Below are positions 3,812 through 11,449 of a DNA stretch of 64,000 nucleotides, one piece after another. Under the pieces are notes generated by a model. The model worked only from the letters and a program-made list of their open reading frames with translations. It searched no databases and was not told the origin of the DNA. A program made the translations under genes and the position numbers. Origin of the DNA: Bigelowiella natans CCMP2755 (Eukaryota; Protista; Cercozoa); the NCBI GenBank assembly GCA_000320545.1, contig ADNK01002821.1:7976-71975 (forward strand), written 5' to 3'. The stretch's first letter is position 1. Every line of letters begins with the position of its first letter.

Positions 3812-4063
3812 GTAGGCATCGTTGCATAAAACCAGGGCAAAACATCCCGAAGACAAGGCAGAAATACAGTAACGGCTAGCTAAACGGTCGGTTTAGAACT
3901 GTTTCCGAAAGTTCCCACAAATCCTCACAAAATGGCCGAATGCCATCGCTCTCAGCGTCGGGCTAGATACCAGTGATATCTATCATCTGCGCTGTCCTGG
4001 AGGCGAGAAAAGGGGAGGAGAAGAACAAGACGAAGAGAGAGAGAAGAAGAAAGGGCACTTGCA

Positions 4064-5980
4064 ATGGGTGCTGCAGGCGCTTCTGCAATGTTAGACGCTG
4101 CCAAGAAGAATGATCTGAACAAGATGAAGAGTTTGCTAAAGAAAAAGGCGGATCTTGAGGCCAAAGATGATGATGGTAGTTCAGGGTGAAATAGATGATG
4201 TGAATGGAAAAAATAGGTGTTTGGTCATGTTGCATCGTTTGTTTGTGCGTGTGTGTGTCTTTGGTAGTAGTGCTGATGATGTTGGACAGCCAATCGCAGT
4301 GTTTGGTCACATTGCATCCTTTGTTTATGCGTGAATGCACATGTGGTCATCGTGAATAGGTAATACGCCGTTGGCCTTGGCCTCTTTGAGGGGTCACAAG
4401 GAAACCGTCGAGTGCCTGATCGACGCGAAAGCGAATCTGGAGAACAAGAGTAATTACGGTGAGAAAAGCCTGAGAGTACGGGCCGTTTGTTGTAGCTCTT
4501 TGGTAGTAGTGCTGATGATGTTGGACAGCCAATCGCAGTGTTTGGTCACATTGCATCCTTTGTTTATGCGTGTATGCACATGTTGTCATCATGAATAGGT
4601 AATACGCCGTTGGCCAGGGCCTCTCGTAAGGGTTGGAAGGGTATCGTCAAGTGCCTGATCGACGCGAAAGTGAATCTGGAGAACAAGGATAATGATGGTG
4701 AGAAAGGCCTGAGAGTACGGGCCGTTTGTTGTAGCTCTTTGGTAGTAGTGCTGATGATGGTGGACAGCCAATCGCGGTGTTTGGTCACATTGCATCGTTT
4801 GTTTATGCGTGAATGCACATGTGGTCATCGTGAATAGGTAATACGCCGTTGGCCTTGGCCTCTTTGAGGGGTCACAAGGAAACCGTCGAGTGCCTGATCG
4901 ACGCGAAAGCGAATCTGGAGAACAAGAGTAATTACGGTGAGAAAAGCCTGAGAGTACGGGCCGTTTGTTGTAGCTCTTTGGTAGTAGTGCTGATGATGTT
5001 GGACAGCCAATCGCAGTGTTTGGTCACATTGCATCCTTTGTTTATGCGTGTATGCACATGTTGTCATCATGAATAGGTAATACGCCGTTGGCCAGGGCCT
5101 CTCGTAAGGGTTGGAAGGGTATCGTCAAGTGCCTGATCGACGCGAAAGTGAATCTGGAGAACAAGGATAATGATGGTGAGAAAGGCCTGAGAGTACGGGC
5201 CGTTTGTTGTAGCTCTTTGGTAGTAGTGCTGATGATGGTGGACAGCCAATCGCAGTGTTTGGTCACATTGCATCCTTTGTTTATGCGTGTATGCACATGT
5301 GGTCATCGTGAATAGGTAATACGCCGTTGGCCTTGGCCTCTTTGAAGGGTTGGAAGGAAATCGTCAAGTGCCTGATCGACGCGAAAGCGAATCTGGAGAA
5401 CAAGAATAATAATGGTGAGAAAAGCCTGAGAGTACGGGCCGTTTGTTGTGGCTTTTTGGTAGTAGTGATGATGATTGTTGGACAGCCAATCGCGGTGTTT
5501 GGTCACATTGCATCGTTTGTTTATGCGTGAATGCACATGTGGTCATCGTGAATAGGTGATACGCCGTTGAACTGGGCCTCTTACAATGGTCACAAGGAAA
5601 CCGTCAAGTGCCTGATTGATGCGAAAGCGAAAAATGGTGGGGAAAGTTGGCTACATATAGAAAACATAGTGGAATTATCTTATGATGACGTGATTGTGGA
5701 GAGAACTATTACGCCGGTTATTAGTACATTATAATGAAGTTAAAACTGTGTTTTCTTCTTTGGAATCAGATCGAATTTCTCTCAGACAGGCTTCGGGGAA
5801 CGGTGTAGAAAACAATGAGCAAATTTTAGTCAGCGGAACATCAGAGATGCCACAGCACAAAGAAGCAGGAAACCAGGTCACGCTGCCCATTTGATTCAAA
5901 AGCAAGCAAATCAAGTATTTGGAATAAATTTTGAAATCGTCAGCATCTCTAATATATTATTTTATTAGCCTTCTATGTAG

Positions 5981-6034
<54 letters not shown>

Positions 6035-6940
6035 TTATTTACTTATCTATCTGTTTATTTATATTTATGTCCATATATGTGCACTCATTTAATCGTATTA
6101 TGCATTATTCACAAATTGTTATCAACCGTCTTTTTGTGTATAACATTTCCATCACACTGCTCACACAATCAGCAACCATACAAAAGACTACTTTGCGCTT
6201 CTTTTTGTGTGCCCAACCCGGTACAGTATCTGACATTTGATGTGGGAAAAAAAAAAAAAAAAACAGAACTGCGAAGAACTTCTCCAAAGATTGAGCTCTC
6301 TGGGCAAACAGCAAGAAGGGCAAAGAGAAGGGTCACTGGTCAGGGCTTCCCCATAGCGTTGCCGATTGAATCGCTCATTTGTATTTGTCGCCTTATTAGG
6401 TTGCGACGCATATTTGTCACCGCGGGCGATATCCGACCGATAAATCCCACCTTGAGCGCCATGCACTGCTGTTTCGGCGAATGAAACAGGAAGGTCGGCA
6501 ATCCAAACCATCAGCAAATTGGCGCGACGGATGCAGTGGGATGAAGATCTATCATGTTTTAACAGACTCAGATGCCTTCGTGATCTACCTGGAGTGCGAT
6601 CAGGAAAGCGATAAACCGTCGCAGGTTTCGAGAAAGTCCAAAGATGAATTTTGGAGAGATCTTTCAGGAGAACGGGTGGAGACCATTCCGCACGTCTTTC
6701 AACTTCCAGCGGAGCAAGTGTATGAGAGGGCAGTCTCCAAACTTGGCAAGAAGAAGGCAAGAGCTGCTACCATGAAGTCTTTCTCATTTCAGATATCCTC
6801 AGTATCAATATTGCCAGGGAATCTTTCTGGAGCGTCGGGTCGCGGTTGGGCAAGATCATTATTCCGTCAGTTCCGAGGTGAAGGACCGATGTACTTGATT
6901 GTAAGGGATATGTCGCATTTCTCCACCACCCCCCTCTCAC

Positions 6941-6981
<41 letters not shown>

Positions 6982-9900
6982 AAATGTGCTCATCTGCTTA
7001 CGCTTTCTTGCAAGGCCTTTGTGAACTGGTGCATTGAAGGAGAGCAAGTGCTGAATGAAGATCTAGGCCTTTTGTCGTCACTATTAGATTGCGCGGACGT
7101 GGTGCACCACCGTAAAGACCGTAGCAAGTGCAAAGTGGATTCCTACATACTGGCTGAGCATGGAACCAATCGAACCAAAAAGATTTATTGGACCATTCAC
7201 AAAAAGTAGGGAAGCGTATGGTTTTCTTCCGTAGTCCCAATCGCAGAATATGCATGATACCAAAAACACACACACACACACACACACATACGCGCGCGCT
7301 ATTATAAACCTTTCATATAAATTTAAATATATGTATATATGTATATATATATATATATATATATTCACGGCACTGCGTTCGCTATATATTAGCTTGTTGA
7401 ATCTATAAATACAGAAAAATGTGTCATTATTTCTAATCTTATCGTAGAAACTCGCACGCCGTTCTGGCGTTCAGTGGATCCCAAAACATTGAGAATTGGA
7501 TACAAAACCTAAAGGTGATACTGATGAATTGTCCGATCGAGACATCCTTGTTGTTACTCAATAGCAGATGTTTTCATAATTTCATACAATTTACACGTAT
7601 CTAGTTTGCGCTAAGGAGCCCCGGAGAGCTTATATCAAAAGACGTGAAAGTGCACCATGGGTTTCTCGAATACATCGAAGAACTGGGCAAGGCTTTAAGC
7701 GAGCTCTACCGCCAGTGTGAGACCGAGCTTGCTTCGGAGCGTGCTTTTATTGTTTATCTCGTCGGACATTCTCTCGGGGGGGCTCTAGCAAGCCTGGCCG
7801 CTGCATGCCTTGTGCTGAACCAGAAGTTTTCCAAGATAACTTCAAAGGTGACATATTTGTTGGAAAACGACCTTCTCTCACCATTACGCGTATTGTGTAC
7901 CCTTAGGTTATGCGTGTCGTTACGTTTGGCCAGCCCTCGGTCGGGGATTCGGCCTTTGCTAAATTGTACAATGAAATAGGGTTAGGCTCGAGAACTACCA
8001 GAGTAATGATGTCAAAGGACGCCGTTCCTGACCTACCGCACACCTATGTGAGCTGGTATCGCCATGTCGGAACGGGGATATATGCGGATGCACTTTTGCC
8101 AAGGTTAAGAGTATATTCACCGATAGAGTTTGCGCCAAATCTGATTGAATTCAAAACACAGGAAGGCTCAGCGGAAATCAACGTGGTGGTCACCTCTGAG
8201 TTGGAGGGTCTGGAAGTTTTCCCACCTGCCTGCGCCGCACCTTCTTCCGGCATATAGGATGGCTATAGACCAAAAAACGCACTTGGAAAAAATATGCGAA
8301 GCTCAATCACCAACGGGCAAACTCTCTCGAGAAAAAAAGAAGACTAGCACTAATGGGGACCCTAGCCGAGAACCAATATTTGCGAAAATAGTTGATGCCT
8401 CCAAGAATGATAGCGAGGCGGTTCTTTACAACTCAAGACACATGCGGCAGCTCGGAGAAATGCTACGTCACATCCCAAAGGCCTCTCACCAAATGCCAGA
8501 AAACATCGCCAAAATTTTCAAATCCGACACAAAAGAAGTCGCTCTGTCATTCTGCCCCCCTTCCCCCGCACGAGGAGCCGCCACGGAAATGTCCGGACTC
8601 GTCACTCTTGGGTCAGGGCTCTACTACGAGAAGATCAAGAGCGACCTGCGGCGCGAACTCCATAGCCAAACAGACGAGATTAAAAATGAGGTGCGAGACT
8701 GTAAGCAGCACATGGACGATGGTTTCACACATATCAAAGGAACTCTTGCACAGATGAAGGAGACGATGGAGCTTCAAACGGTCCAGCTGTCTCATATCAT
8801 CAGCGGCCAGGAGATGACCCACAGACAGTTGGAAAAAATCAACAGTAAGCTCGACGAAATTCCGAGGCTAATTCAGAAAAGTGATAAGATGAAGCTGGCT
8901 AGGGAATACCGTGAGCATTGGAATAAGGTGCAGCATAGCTACAACAGAGCATCACAGCGTGGTTCCGACGCACATAAGTCTCTAAAGTCGGTATCTAAGA
9001 ACATGATTTTTCATATCAAAAGCGTGCTGCAAACTTATTGCCCGAATCCCGGTCACCAAATGCGGCTGCCTTACGTCGCTGGCTTTGTTTTCGCGTCTCG
9101 CGCTAGGATGGACGCTTTCCTTTTTGAAGCAGCTCCCACTCATAGCTACGAGGCCAGCCAAGGCGCCACCAAGTATGACAACTACCAAAGGTGGGACAAA
9201 ACGAAAGTGGCGGAATGGCTGAACAAGCATGACTCTCCAGATGTCCAGGACTGCTCTGACCAATTTCTACAGGAAGGGATAAATGGCAGTGTTCTGAAAG
9301 AGTTGAATATAGATGAAGATTATGACAATTTCTTTGCAGAGATGAAGTTCGGAGGCGTTGGTCGCAAACGGCTTCTGAAGAAGTACATCAAGTCATTAGA
9401 AAATAGCCCGGGAAAGGAAGTGAAAGAGGACCATGATGCGTTGGAGTTTATTCGTGAGGCAGCGAATCTAATCGACGAAGAGTTGTCCCATATAGCTCAA
9501 TGCTCCCGCTTCAACCTGGCTGAGATCGTTGAGCGACATTTTTCAACCATGACCCAGTTGATGTCCCTACGCCATGGTTTGTTTTCCGGACTTCGGAACA
9601 ACTCTCGCACCGCCGCTCTTTCCTCAAAGGAGGGCAAGGTTTCGGACTATGCCAATCAATGGCGGATTGTAGAGCAGGTCCGGGACATCGTTCTCCGCTT
9701 GGGGAAGATTCCCCGAGAGTGCGTGCGCGCGCTGGTAGAGGCTGTAGCTCCCGGGGCCCATGCTTCGTTTTTCGCGTCTCTCAATGTGGAATTCGAAGGA
9801 GAGATGGCAAGTGTGAAGCCAGCCGCAAGAGCGATTGACATGAAGCTCGTGTCGAAGATGGTAGACACTCCAGCGAACCGAAAAGCTTTAAGGGAATACC

Positions 9901-10494
9901 TTCAGGAACATCCCTATGCCATAACTCACTTCGACCTTGAAAGCTTGGAGGAGGTGGTCGTCTCTTGTTTGTCGCCCGGAATGGATGAAGAACTGCTTCT
10001 CAGTCTGATGCATGAAGATCATAAACGCTCTTGGGAAAGCAAACGAATAGCATCAAAGATAACGTCCATGACTACAAAGCACCCGCTCATTTGTTTGACT
10101 GCCCACCACCGTCGGGTCGACGTGGTTGGAATGATTCATCAGGAAGAGAATGGCTTGGAAGCGCTTCGAGCATTGATGCATATGAATGTGTTCTCTTCCA
10201 CGGAAACAGACAACAAAATGATCCAGAAAATAGTTGAAGACATTGCCCCAAAGCTGAATATACCGAAGGTCCGGCAAAAGCTTTAACTAGACCTACGAAT
10301 TCCATCTGCATCAATTTGGCTTTCATGCATGTGTGCTACTCGAACGACTTTGTGTGTGTTGATTTTGTTCTACTAACGAGCAGGTTCATCGAGAATTTTT
10401 ATGCAAGACAAATGGAGCCTCTATTGAAATGCGTCTACAGTTAGCTATGGAATATCTCGAGCTTCTCGCAAAGGTTTCACCAGCATCACAATGA
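4064..10494 (+). CDS. Multi-exon protein: N-terminal ankyrin repeat array - linker - class 3 lipase (alpha/beta hydrolase) - coiled coil - SAM domain - helical C-terminus
   Basis: Predicted exons 4064-4175, 4360-4458, 4599-4697, 4838-4936, 5077-5175, 5316-5414, 5556-5636, 5770-5876, ~6268-6338, 6400-6900, 7015-7205, 7448-7514, 7605-7847, 7907-~8200, ~8258-10268, 10384-10494, with compatible intron phases. Lipase_3 motifs: LAFSGSQNIENWIQNL, VHHGF, GHSLGGALASLAA, TFGQPSVGD, DAVPDLP. SAM-like segment WDKTKVAEWL..FLQEGINGSVLKEL..GRKRLLKKYIKSL (~9190-9400). TACTAAC branch site before the last acceptor. The ANK-to-lipase join is inferred, not proven. Confidence 0.7.
4257..5636 (+). repeat. Tandem array of ~239-bp exon+intron units (99-nt ankyrin exon + 140-nt intron), order A-B-A-B-C-D
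   Basis: Exon starts at 4360, 4599, 4838, 5077, 5316, 5556. Each unit reads GAATAG|GTAATACGCCGTTG...G|GTGAGAAA. A 478-bp higher-order dimer is visible. Confidence 0.95.
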
Positions 10495-11449
10495 GCATCT
10501 TCATTGTTGATGGACAAATCTCGTCGCTAAATCGCGGGAAGCGCAGCTGCTTTTACCATTTGCGTTTTGTGAATTCTCCGTTGGAACATTTGTGCTGGCC
10601 GTCACTAGGTCATGTCATATGAGAGTAAGCGACAACTTAGCAGCGATCTATTACTACTGCACAGATGAACTAGATGAAGTTGTGCAAGACGGATGTAATA
10701 AATCAATTAAATTTGCTCAATGGTCATCAAGTTGTGCACACGCATGCATACACATACATATATCTAGACATGTATGATTATCCGAGAGATTATTCAGAGA
10801 CTAGTAACGTTTGCAGCTGATCTAGTAATGTGTGTACGTGATATATGATGATGATCGAGATATGAAGTACTACTAACAATGTCTTGTTTTACGTACGACA
10901 CGTAGCGTGCGCCCAACTTTTGCACTGGTTAGCTCGCAGTATATAATGTATAATGGTATTGCAGTAGTACCTAGCTTTGCAAGCGTGCATGCTAGCATGC
11001 TGCACATCTAGACGCCTGCTATAGTATCTAGGTATGGCTGGCACGTCACAACATCCAACCGCGCGCGCGTATGTAACTGGAAGGAATTTCGAATTCTTAC
11101 AACTCGATGTGAGCATGCTTACATCTTCTTCTATGATTTCACAGTCTCCATTACTTCATCTTTTTCGCATATATAGCTATTAATCGCGCACATGGATACG
11201 ATAGATGGTGAAGAGTTGGATAGAATGAAATGTAGCATGGATCCGAAGCTGGGATACGAGGCTAGTTTGATCTTTAGAAATATGGTATTTACAATCCCAA
11301 GGCTTCTAAGACGGGAGGGGTCTGATTTCTTTTTAAATCATTGCTTTACCATATTGCCCCATTTTATATATGTGCTAAGTTTTGATCTATGTTGGTTCGC
11401 ATCACCAAATTCTTCGTCCCTAGTACTACTAACCTCTTCATCATACACT

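Follow-up and report, generated by a model that had tools for sequence, protein, structure and literature searches.

A Bigelowiella natans gene joining ankyrin repeats, a class 3 lipase, a heptad-like helix and a probable SAM domain in one spliced transcript

The closest described systems to the gene analysed here share parts of its design. The gene lies on the forward strand of a 64,000-nucleotide stretch of Bigelowiella natans CCMP2755 DNA (contig ADNK01002821.1, positions 7,976 to 71,975; hereafter the window, whose own numbering is used throughout), and its predicted protein runs through about seven ankyrin (ANK) repeats, a linker of about 170 residues, a Lipase_3 domain, a low-complexity spacer, a helix, a probable SAM domain and a C-terminal domain. 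For the enzyme itself, the nearest reference is given by the class 3 lipases of Rhizomucor miehei and Thermomyces lanuginosus, which share with it the GHSLG elbow, the Asp of D-x-V-P, the His of H-x-x-x-x-Y and a Trp-bearing lid and oxyanion segment. However, these fungal enzymes are secreted, single-domain proteins of about 270 residues, whereas the B. natans protein would be an intracellular, multidomain chain of 1375 residues.

Intracellular lipolytic enzymes carrying ankyrin or SAM modules offer a comparison of a different kind. The phospholipase iPLA2-beta (PLA2G6) is cytosolic, acts peripherally on membranes and requires oligomerisation for its function. It resembles the B. natans protein in having N-terminal ankyrins, a linker and a serine lipase in one chain, although its catalytic centre is a patatin Ser-Asp dyad instead of an alpha/beta-hydrolase triad, it has no SAM domain and there is no sequence relationship between the two. 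In DDHD2 and SEC23IP, a SAM domain is attached to an intracellular DDHD phospholipase. In the plant proteins EDS1, PAD4 and SAG101, used in immune signalling, a lipase_3-like domain is followed by a helical region, as here, and the catalytic triad is dispensable for EDS1 signalling; in contrast, the B. natans triad is intact, the sequence similarity is weak and no EP domain was detected among the Pfam matches at E <= 0.1 on the public model of the gene (P0001, described below). Finally, one published account of tankyrase describes target-binding ankyrins together with a polymerising SAM domain that boosts the attached PARP enzyme (PMC4980433). The B. natans protein resembles tankyrase in this scaffold logic and differs from it in the enzyme and in the domain order, and its probable SAM domain, unlike those of tankyrase and of DDHD2 and SEC23IP, is preceded by both the lipase and a long helix.

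A single spliced gene and its corrected model

Contigs from three transcript runs (X1, X15 and X18, belonging to three studies) and the reads of a raw RNA-seq run (X22) were aligned over positions 5420-10500. The source of X18 is a relative of B. natans whose coding sequence differs by about 1%, and X22 is a thin sampling of 45 raw reads, from which starts, ends and strand cannot be read. The joint 5636>5770, leading out of the last ANK exon, is found as a GT..AG joint in X1, X15 and X18, as are 6338>6400, 6493>6566 and 6877>7015 and, further 3', 7205>7448, 7514>7605, 7847>7907, 8103>8162 and 10268>10384, the last being present also in one raw X22 read. The AAT G|GTGGGG donor after 5636, proposed by an initial annotation made from the sequence alone, is therefore genuine and used. 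Moreover, the junction series 5636->5770->~6268->6400, put forward in the same annotation as the passage from ankyrins to lipase, was recovered in the transcript contigs, together with the linker exon 5770-5876 and the one after it, which had been given as ~6268-6338. For this second exon no joint 5876>6267 was reported, its acceptor being located within a poly-A stretch. Between 5876 and 6400, X15 record 5 has exactly 72 letters, 63 of them aligning to 6275-6337, and these otherwise unplaced letters and the joint 6338>6400 put the exon at 6267-6338, behind an AG. In the opening letters of the same record the end of exon 5316-5414 is followed directly by 5556, the same loose end standing before 5556 in X1, so that the joint 5414>5556 is used as well. 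One further joint, 6756>6818, found in X15 and X18, was reported as AG..CC with three ambiguous letters; since GC..AG is the sole known splice type within this ambiguity, intron 6757-6817 is assigned to the GC..AG type.

One X18 contig (record 7, 3689 nucleotides (nt), depth 28) takes in the last ANK exon and continues past the stop codon. Canonical splicing from the donor of an ANK exon into linker and lipase exons needs one pre-mRNA, so these contigs are not a merger of neighbouring genes made by the assembler. Counted by coordinates, as were the phases, the 18 exons total 4128 nt, that is, 1375 codons and a TGA, and none of them holds an in-phase stop, the short linkers 5770-5876, 6267-6338 and 6400-6493 included. 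With spliced contigs from three runs in three studies, the ANK array, the Lipase_3 domain, the helix and the SAM domain (the last a probable one) are encoded in one expressed polypeptide, in the order first read from the sequence.

The public gene model differs considerably from this structure. A search with the large exon gave one strong database match, the Joint Genome Institute (JGI) model Bigna1 143766 (P0001, 1080 residues, 100% identity), which spans 6481-10286. This model takes the ATG at 6481 as its start and leaves introns 6494-6565 and 6757-6817 unspliced, its donor at 6901 is wrong and the last intron of the gene is absent from it, four introns being mis-called in all; it is thus without the ankyrins, partly wrong in its N-terminal region and wrong at its C-terminus. 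The start at 6481 is read as a prediction artefact, since a donor in use follows it at a distance of 13 nt and two real introns beyond it were left unspliced. The joints confirm the introns 6494-6565, 6757-6817, 8104-8161 (58 nt) and 10269-10383, the last of the gene. The donor at 6901 was also part of the initial annotation, which had drawn a single exon at 6400-6900: its start at 6400 holds, but the segment consists of three exons, and the joint 6877>7015 rules out 6901 in favour of a donor at 6878. A candidate intron at 8104-8257 is likewise ruled out by the joint 8103>8162. The end coordinate given earlier, 10494, is the true end of the stop codon, and at the other end of the gene the ATG at 4064 (ATG GGT) is the first ATG past an in-frame TGA at 3974.

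Coordinates and characters of the exons are collected in the table. Some observations on the introns accompany them. A low-depth X1 contig retains the GC..AG intron 6757-6817 with a 1-nt deletion at 6814, the retained piece being then 60 nt by phase arithmetic, so that the downstream frame is kept. Within the 390-nt intron, at 6097-6206, there is a 95-nt X1 contig of depth 2 whose continuation has no match in the window. Also, (TA)n, (GT)n and (CA)n microsatellites occur in several introns (5985-6030, 6945-6980, 7265-7365) and cause spurious sub-threshold Rfam matches.

Table. Exons of the ANK-lipase-helix-SAM gene (positions in the window)
Feature	Position	Strand	Characters and evidence
Exon 1	4064..4175	+	ATG, MG- N-terminus, N-capping ankyrin-like repeat; phase 1, donor G|GTAGTT; Pfam Ank_4/Ank weak, E 0.02-0.16; predicted
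Five 99-nt one-repeat ankyrin exons	4360-4458, 4599-4697, 4838-4936, 5077-5175, 5316-5414	+	Introns of 140-141 nt
Last ankyrin exon, C-capping, 27 codons (81 nt)	5556..5636	+	Donor G|GTGGGG; Pfam Ank_2/Ank, E 1e-4 to 5e-4
Five linker exons	5770-5876, 6267-6338, 6400-6493, 6566-6756, 6818-6877	+	Joints; no Pfam domain
Four lipase exons	7015-7205, 7448-7514, 7605-7847, 7907-8103	+	Oxyanion/lid segment, Ser546, Asp609; Lipase_3 and joints
Large exon 17	8162..10268	+	His663, low-complexity linker, helical module ~8616-9143, probable SAM ~9189-9383, C-terminal domain ~9591-10268
Last exon, 36 codons and TGA (10492-10494)	10384..10494	+	Joint 10268>10384

The lipase domain

For the domain searches the exons were scored singly, and P0001 stood for the part from the lipase to the C-terminus. 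P0001 matches Lipase_3 (PF01764) at 105.7 bits against a cut-off of 22 (E 2.4e-30), and two single lipase exons reach 45.7 and 36.5 bits (E 8e-12 and 5.6e-9), and the GHSLG and DxVP motifs (here DAVP) noted at first are intact. The closest solved structures are those of the Rhizomucor miehei and Thermomyces lipases, with E values of 5e-14 to 8e-14, whereas EDS1 and PAD4 structures match weakly, at E 7.5e-4 to 5e-3. An alignment of 26 sequences, comprising residues 141-520 of P0001, 23 full-length homologues and the lipase regions of two further proteins (P0002 and P0004), places S142, D205 and H259 of the P0001 segment in invariant columns. In the numbering of the spliced protein, these residues are Ser546 (TCT 7770-7772, in GHSLG), Asp609 (GAC 8018-8020, in DAVP) and His663 (CAC 8238-8240, in APHLLPAY). 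The invariant columns include G-H-S-L-G-G as well as the DAVP Asp and the APHLLPAY His, and the Asp-to-His spacing is 54, equal to that of the Rhizomucor lipase. The Trp-bearing F-x-G-S...N-W segment, which in fungal lipases forms the oxyanion hole and the lid, is also kept. On the other hand, the His of ASHQM, which had been suggested as the catalytic one, is displaced by His663, being located about 80 residues further on in the low-complexity spacer. Together these features identify the domain, as judged from its sequence, as a class 3 (Rhizomucor-type) serine lipase that is predicted to be catalytically complete. No transmembrane-like segment was found in P0001, where the sole hydrophobic peak corresponds to the nucleophile elbow, and the encoded protein is predicted to be soluble and intracellular, without a signal peptide.

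Non-catalytic modules and relatives

The 99-nt exons hold one ankyrin repeat apiece, in phase 1-1, with Pfam Ank E values of 5e-5 to 4e-3 per single exon; in the PF00023/PF12796 search the best single exon scores 23.8 bits (cut-off 21.1), and the remaining ones lie at 18-20.6 bits. Six tandem units share the TPL..G...V..L signature, and Tandem Repeats Finder reports a period of 239 nt with 5.7 copies and 90% matches. Exon 2 equals exon 4 and exon 3 equals exon 5 in sequence, which amounts to a 478-nt higher-order duplication; of the internal repeats, no more than three types are distinct, and two of these are present as exact duplicates. Neighbouring exon types share 82% identity and encode repeats that differ at 10 of 32 residues, whereas the introns between them (4176-5555) are 95-100% identical. 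In the exons, the proportion of non-synonymous differences (pN) is about 0.21 against about 0.12 for synonymous ones (pS), values taken from very few sites, pS coming from about 2.5 changes. This points to selection that keeps adjacent repeats different or diversifies them, which fits a selected binding surface and also the avoidance of identical neighbours. In X18, the last ankyrin exon is preceded by an end of the exon-6 type or of the exon-3/5 type (5554-5556), corresponding to exon skipping or to a different repeat number; all ANK exons being in phase 1-1, skipping leaves the frame intact. The ankyrin introns carry a UGAUGA motif inside an inverted repeat, but a search of these conserved introns for an RNA element gave no Rfam family and an unremarkable fold z-score of 0.38. 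At the predicted N-terminus, M-G-A-A-G-A-S is compatible with the N-myristoylation motif, which calls for Met-Gly at the start and, at position 6, a residue that is small and uncharged.

After the lipase and its spacer, the helical module is predicted to be long, amphipathic and heptad-like. In a two-sequence AlphaFold model with an overall predicted local distance difference test score (pLDDT) of 48, residues 525-585 of P0001 form a long helix at pLDDT 70-82, and hydrophobic occupancy of the heptad a and d positions is 0.54-0.56 against 0.21-0.22 elsewhere, in one register over residues 525-620. The heptad-rich helix seen initially in this place agrees with both results.

SAM domains are five-helix bundles of about 65 residues with the pattern W..V..WL / F....I.G..L..L / G.R..L. 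The segment at ~9189-9383 stays below the Pfam cut-off (PF00536/PF07647; SAM_1 19.6 bits against 23, E 1.2e-3) and is not among the genome-wide SAM_1 loci at E <= 0.01. However, hhalign against a profile of 12 SAM domains from the same genome gives a probability of 81.8% over 55 columns. The two nearest clusters in an ESM-feature search are SAM clusters, with a score of 0.88, which serves as a lead only. A single-sequence AlphaFold model of the segment has five helices at pLDDT 51; Foldseek on this low-confidence model returned no significant match, three of its four top rows being SAM domains. The SAM domain claimed earlier at ~9190-9400 thus holds as a probable one according to the profile comparison, at nearly the same place, and falls short by the Pfam score. 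For the C-terminal domain, which takes up about 230 residues of exon 17, no Pfam family was found and ESM Atlas features gave no usable match. Its one counterpart is the Logan contig L010:1-684 (ERR15116648), with 30% identity over 244 columns, and it appears to be lineage-restricted. L010 has one in-frame stop and, like exon 17, finishes with P-K-V.

In the 91.4 Mb B. natans assembly, the large exon, the SAM segment and the 239-nt ankyrin unit occur once each, the gene being single copy without a paralogue family. Besides this gene, the same genome holds about 19 Lipase_3 loci, and its ankyrin candidate segments number at least 998 and its SAM_1 loci 23, so ANK and SAM are common, shuffled and very promiscuous modules in it. 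No second gene combining ANK and Lipase_3 was seen, the family scans, with 150 of the 998 ANK candidates scored, having no contig in common. Outside this genome, word-based searches with the large exon and P0001 retrieved the model itself and one dinoflagellate Lipase_3 protein only, and an exhaustive HMMER search of 1.84 billion representative proteins gave four matches at E <= 1e-3, of which P0003 and P0004 alone were informative and none had the ANK-Lipase_3-SAM architecture. Two JGI metagenome scans gave no relative either, and thus no close relative outside the B. natans lineage was found in these protein and metagenome searches. The view that the architecture is undescribed agrees with full-text literature searches, which returned no paper on the gene or on the architecture; where all three domain terms occur together, they refer to separate viral genes and to no fusion. 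P0004 (1558 residues, from a 7452-nt contig of JGI metagenome 3300045300) resembles the B. natans protein in two modules, being 30% identical to it in the Lipase_3 domain and 27%, over 191 residues, in the helical one. It differs in having no ANK or SAM matches and, after the helical module, shows sub-threshold matches to an AIG1-type GTPase (20.0 bits against 27) and to IQ (19.2 against 20.3). Lipase and helix modules may thus form a small family in protists, in which the C-terminal parts are exchanged.

Function and competing explanations

We regard as fairly probable that the gene encodes a cytosolic, scaffold-tagged active lipase, more likely one for regulated lipolysis or for membrane-lipid signalling or remodelling than one dedicated to immunity. 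In such a protein, the lipase would cleave ester bonds of glycerolipids at the surface of a membrane or lipid droplet by means of Ser546-Asp609-His663 and the Trp-containing lid, and the non-catalytic modules would set the place and timing of its action: docking to a protein partner would fall to the ankyrins, myristoylation may occur at the N-terminal Gly, and self-association of the helix and SAM domain would concentrate or activate the enzyme. In function the protein would be nearest to iPLA2-beta, DDHD2 and tankyrase; by sequence, its membership is limited to Lipase_3, ANK and, probably, SAM. Several observations weigh against this explanation. The SAM domain lies below the Pfam cut-off and both AlphaFold models are of low confidence (pLDDT 48-51). 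Transcript coverage reaches from the end of exon 5316-5414 to the stop, exon 1 and the MG- start being predicted. Ankyrin exons that diverge faster than their introns suit recognition better than plain docking. Also, at 8032, just after the codon of the catalytic Asp, one C of GACC is missing from an X15 contig (depth 65), which would shift the frame; X1 and X18 are without this deletion. It would be an allele of that strain or a fault in the assembly and, if real, would make the enzyme dispensable in the X15 culture. Finally, 24 codons differ from the X18 relative with the triad unchanged, 9 synonymously and 15 non-synonymously, and this ratio suggests moderate purifying selection at most.

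The divergence of the ankyrins brings in an immune alternative, in which diversified repeats would bind a foreign ligand, the helix and SAM domain would polymerise and the clustered lipase would attack membranes in defence, allorecognition or prey handling, without a nucleotide-binding leucine-rich repeat receptor (NLR). The excess of pN over pS and the contrast between exons and introns speak for it, and the variable positions include loop and helix-1 sites, the usual binding face of ankyrins according to the design of DARPins. Moreover, the exon-3/5 type joined straight to the last ANK exon in X18 indicates that repeat number may vary, and P0004 couples a related lipase and helical module to the sub-threshold AIG1-like GTPase region. 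However, the gene has one copy and no expanded family of paralogues, its array has few repeat types, two of them exact duplicates, and the low pS depends on about 2.5 changes. Pfam searches of every exon and of P0001 found no death-fold, TIR, NB-ARC or NACHT domain and no P-loop NTPase family, and the lipase is closest to ordinary triacylglycerol lipases of the fungal type, EDS1 and PAD4 matching at E ~1e-3. Since ANK and SAM are common, shuffled modules in B. natans, a generic scaffold-tagged lipase is more economical than an immune protein. For these reasons we hold the sensor-effector function to be unlikely, and there is a similarly small chance of a single-chain recognition-and-attack protein, whose fast-diversifying ankyrins, which exon skipping or unequal crossing-over could change in number, would recognise a foreign ligand and switch on a membrane-attacking lipase through helix and SAM polymerisation. 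If true, it would be an NLR-independent immune or non-self module on the logic of tankyrase and SARM1, and a new kind of protist immune effector.

Two other explanations dispense with one part of the design. The locus could hold two functional genes, one for an ANK-only protein ending at the TAA at ~5732 and the other for a lipase starting at the ATG 6481, the fusion RNA being a minor read-through isoform. Retention of intron 5637-5769 would indeed stop the frame at 5732, Bigna1 143766 starts at 6481, and in X1 the 5' contigs have depths of 3-5 against 49 for the 3' contig, about 10-fold lower. This difference is attributed to 3' bias because the X1 3' contig begins inside an exon (7649), and in X15 the 5' and 3' depths are similar (38.7 against 65.5), while X18 is even and covers the ANK exon to the 3' end in the one contig of depth 28. 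Contig starts or ends form no cluster at 5900-6500, the depth of raw reads there being too low for proof. Two genes are thus improbable, even if a shorter isoform may exist beside the full-length RNA. Still more doubtful, to the point of being very improbable, is a non-catalytic scaffold in the manner of EDS1, PAD4 and SAG101, with the lipase fold as an interaction platform only. The weak EDS1 and PAD4 structure matches and the helical region after the lipase domain, as in EDS1, recall such a protein, but Ser, Asp, His and the oxyanion and lid segment are all intact, Pfam gives no EP-domain match and active fungal lipases match far better.

The most direct consequence of this analysis is a correction of the public gene model, the annotated 1080-residue B. 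natans lipase being a 1375-residue ANK-lipase-helix-SAM protein, with the SAM domain a probable one. As a scaffold-tagged lipase, this protein would place a class 3 lipase as the third catalytic type in a design that recurs, an enzyme attached to a scaffold of ankyrins and/or SAM, and it would lend itself well to the question of whether an interfacial lipase can be gated by polymerisation of a SAM domain or a helix. On present evidence, the gene is a further example of heavy domain shuffling in a chlorarachniophyte.

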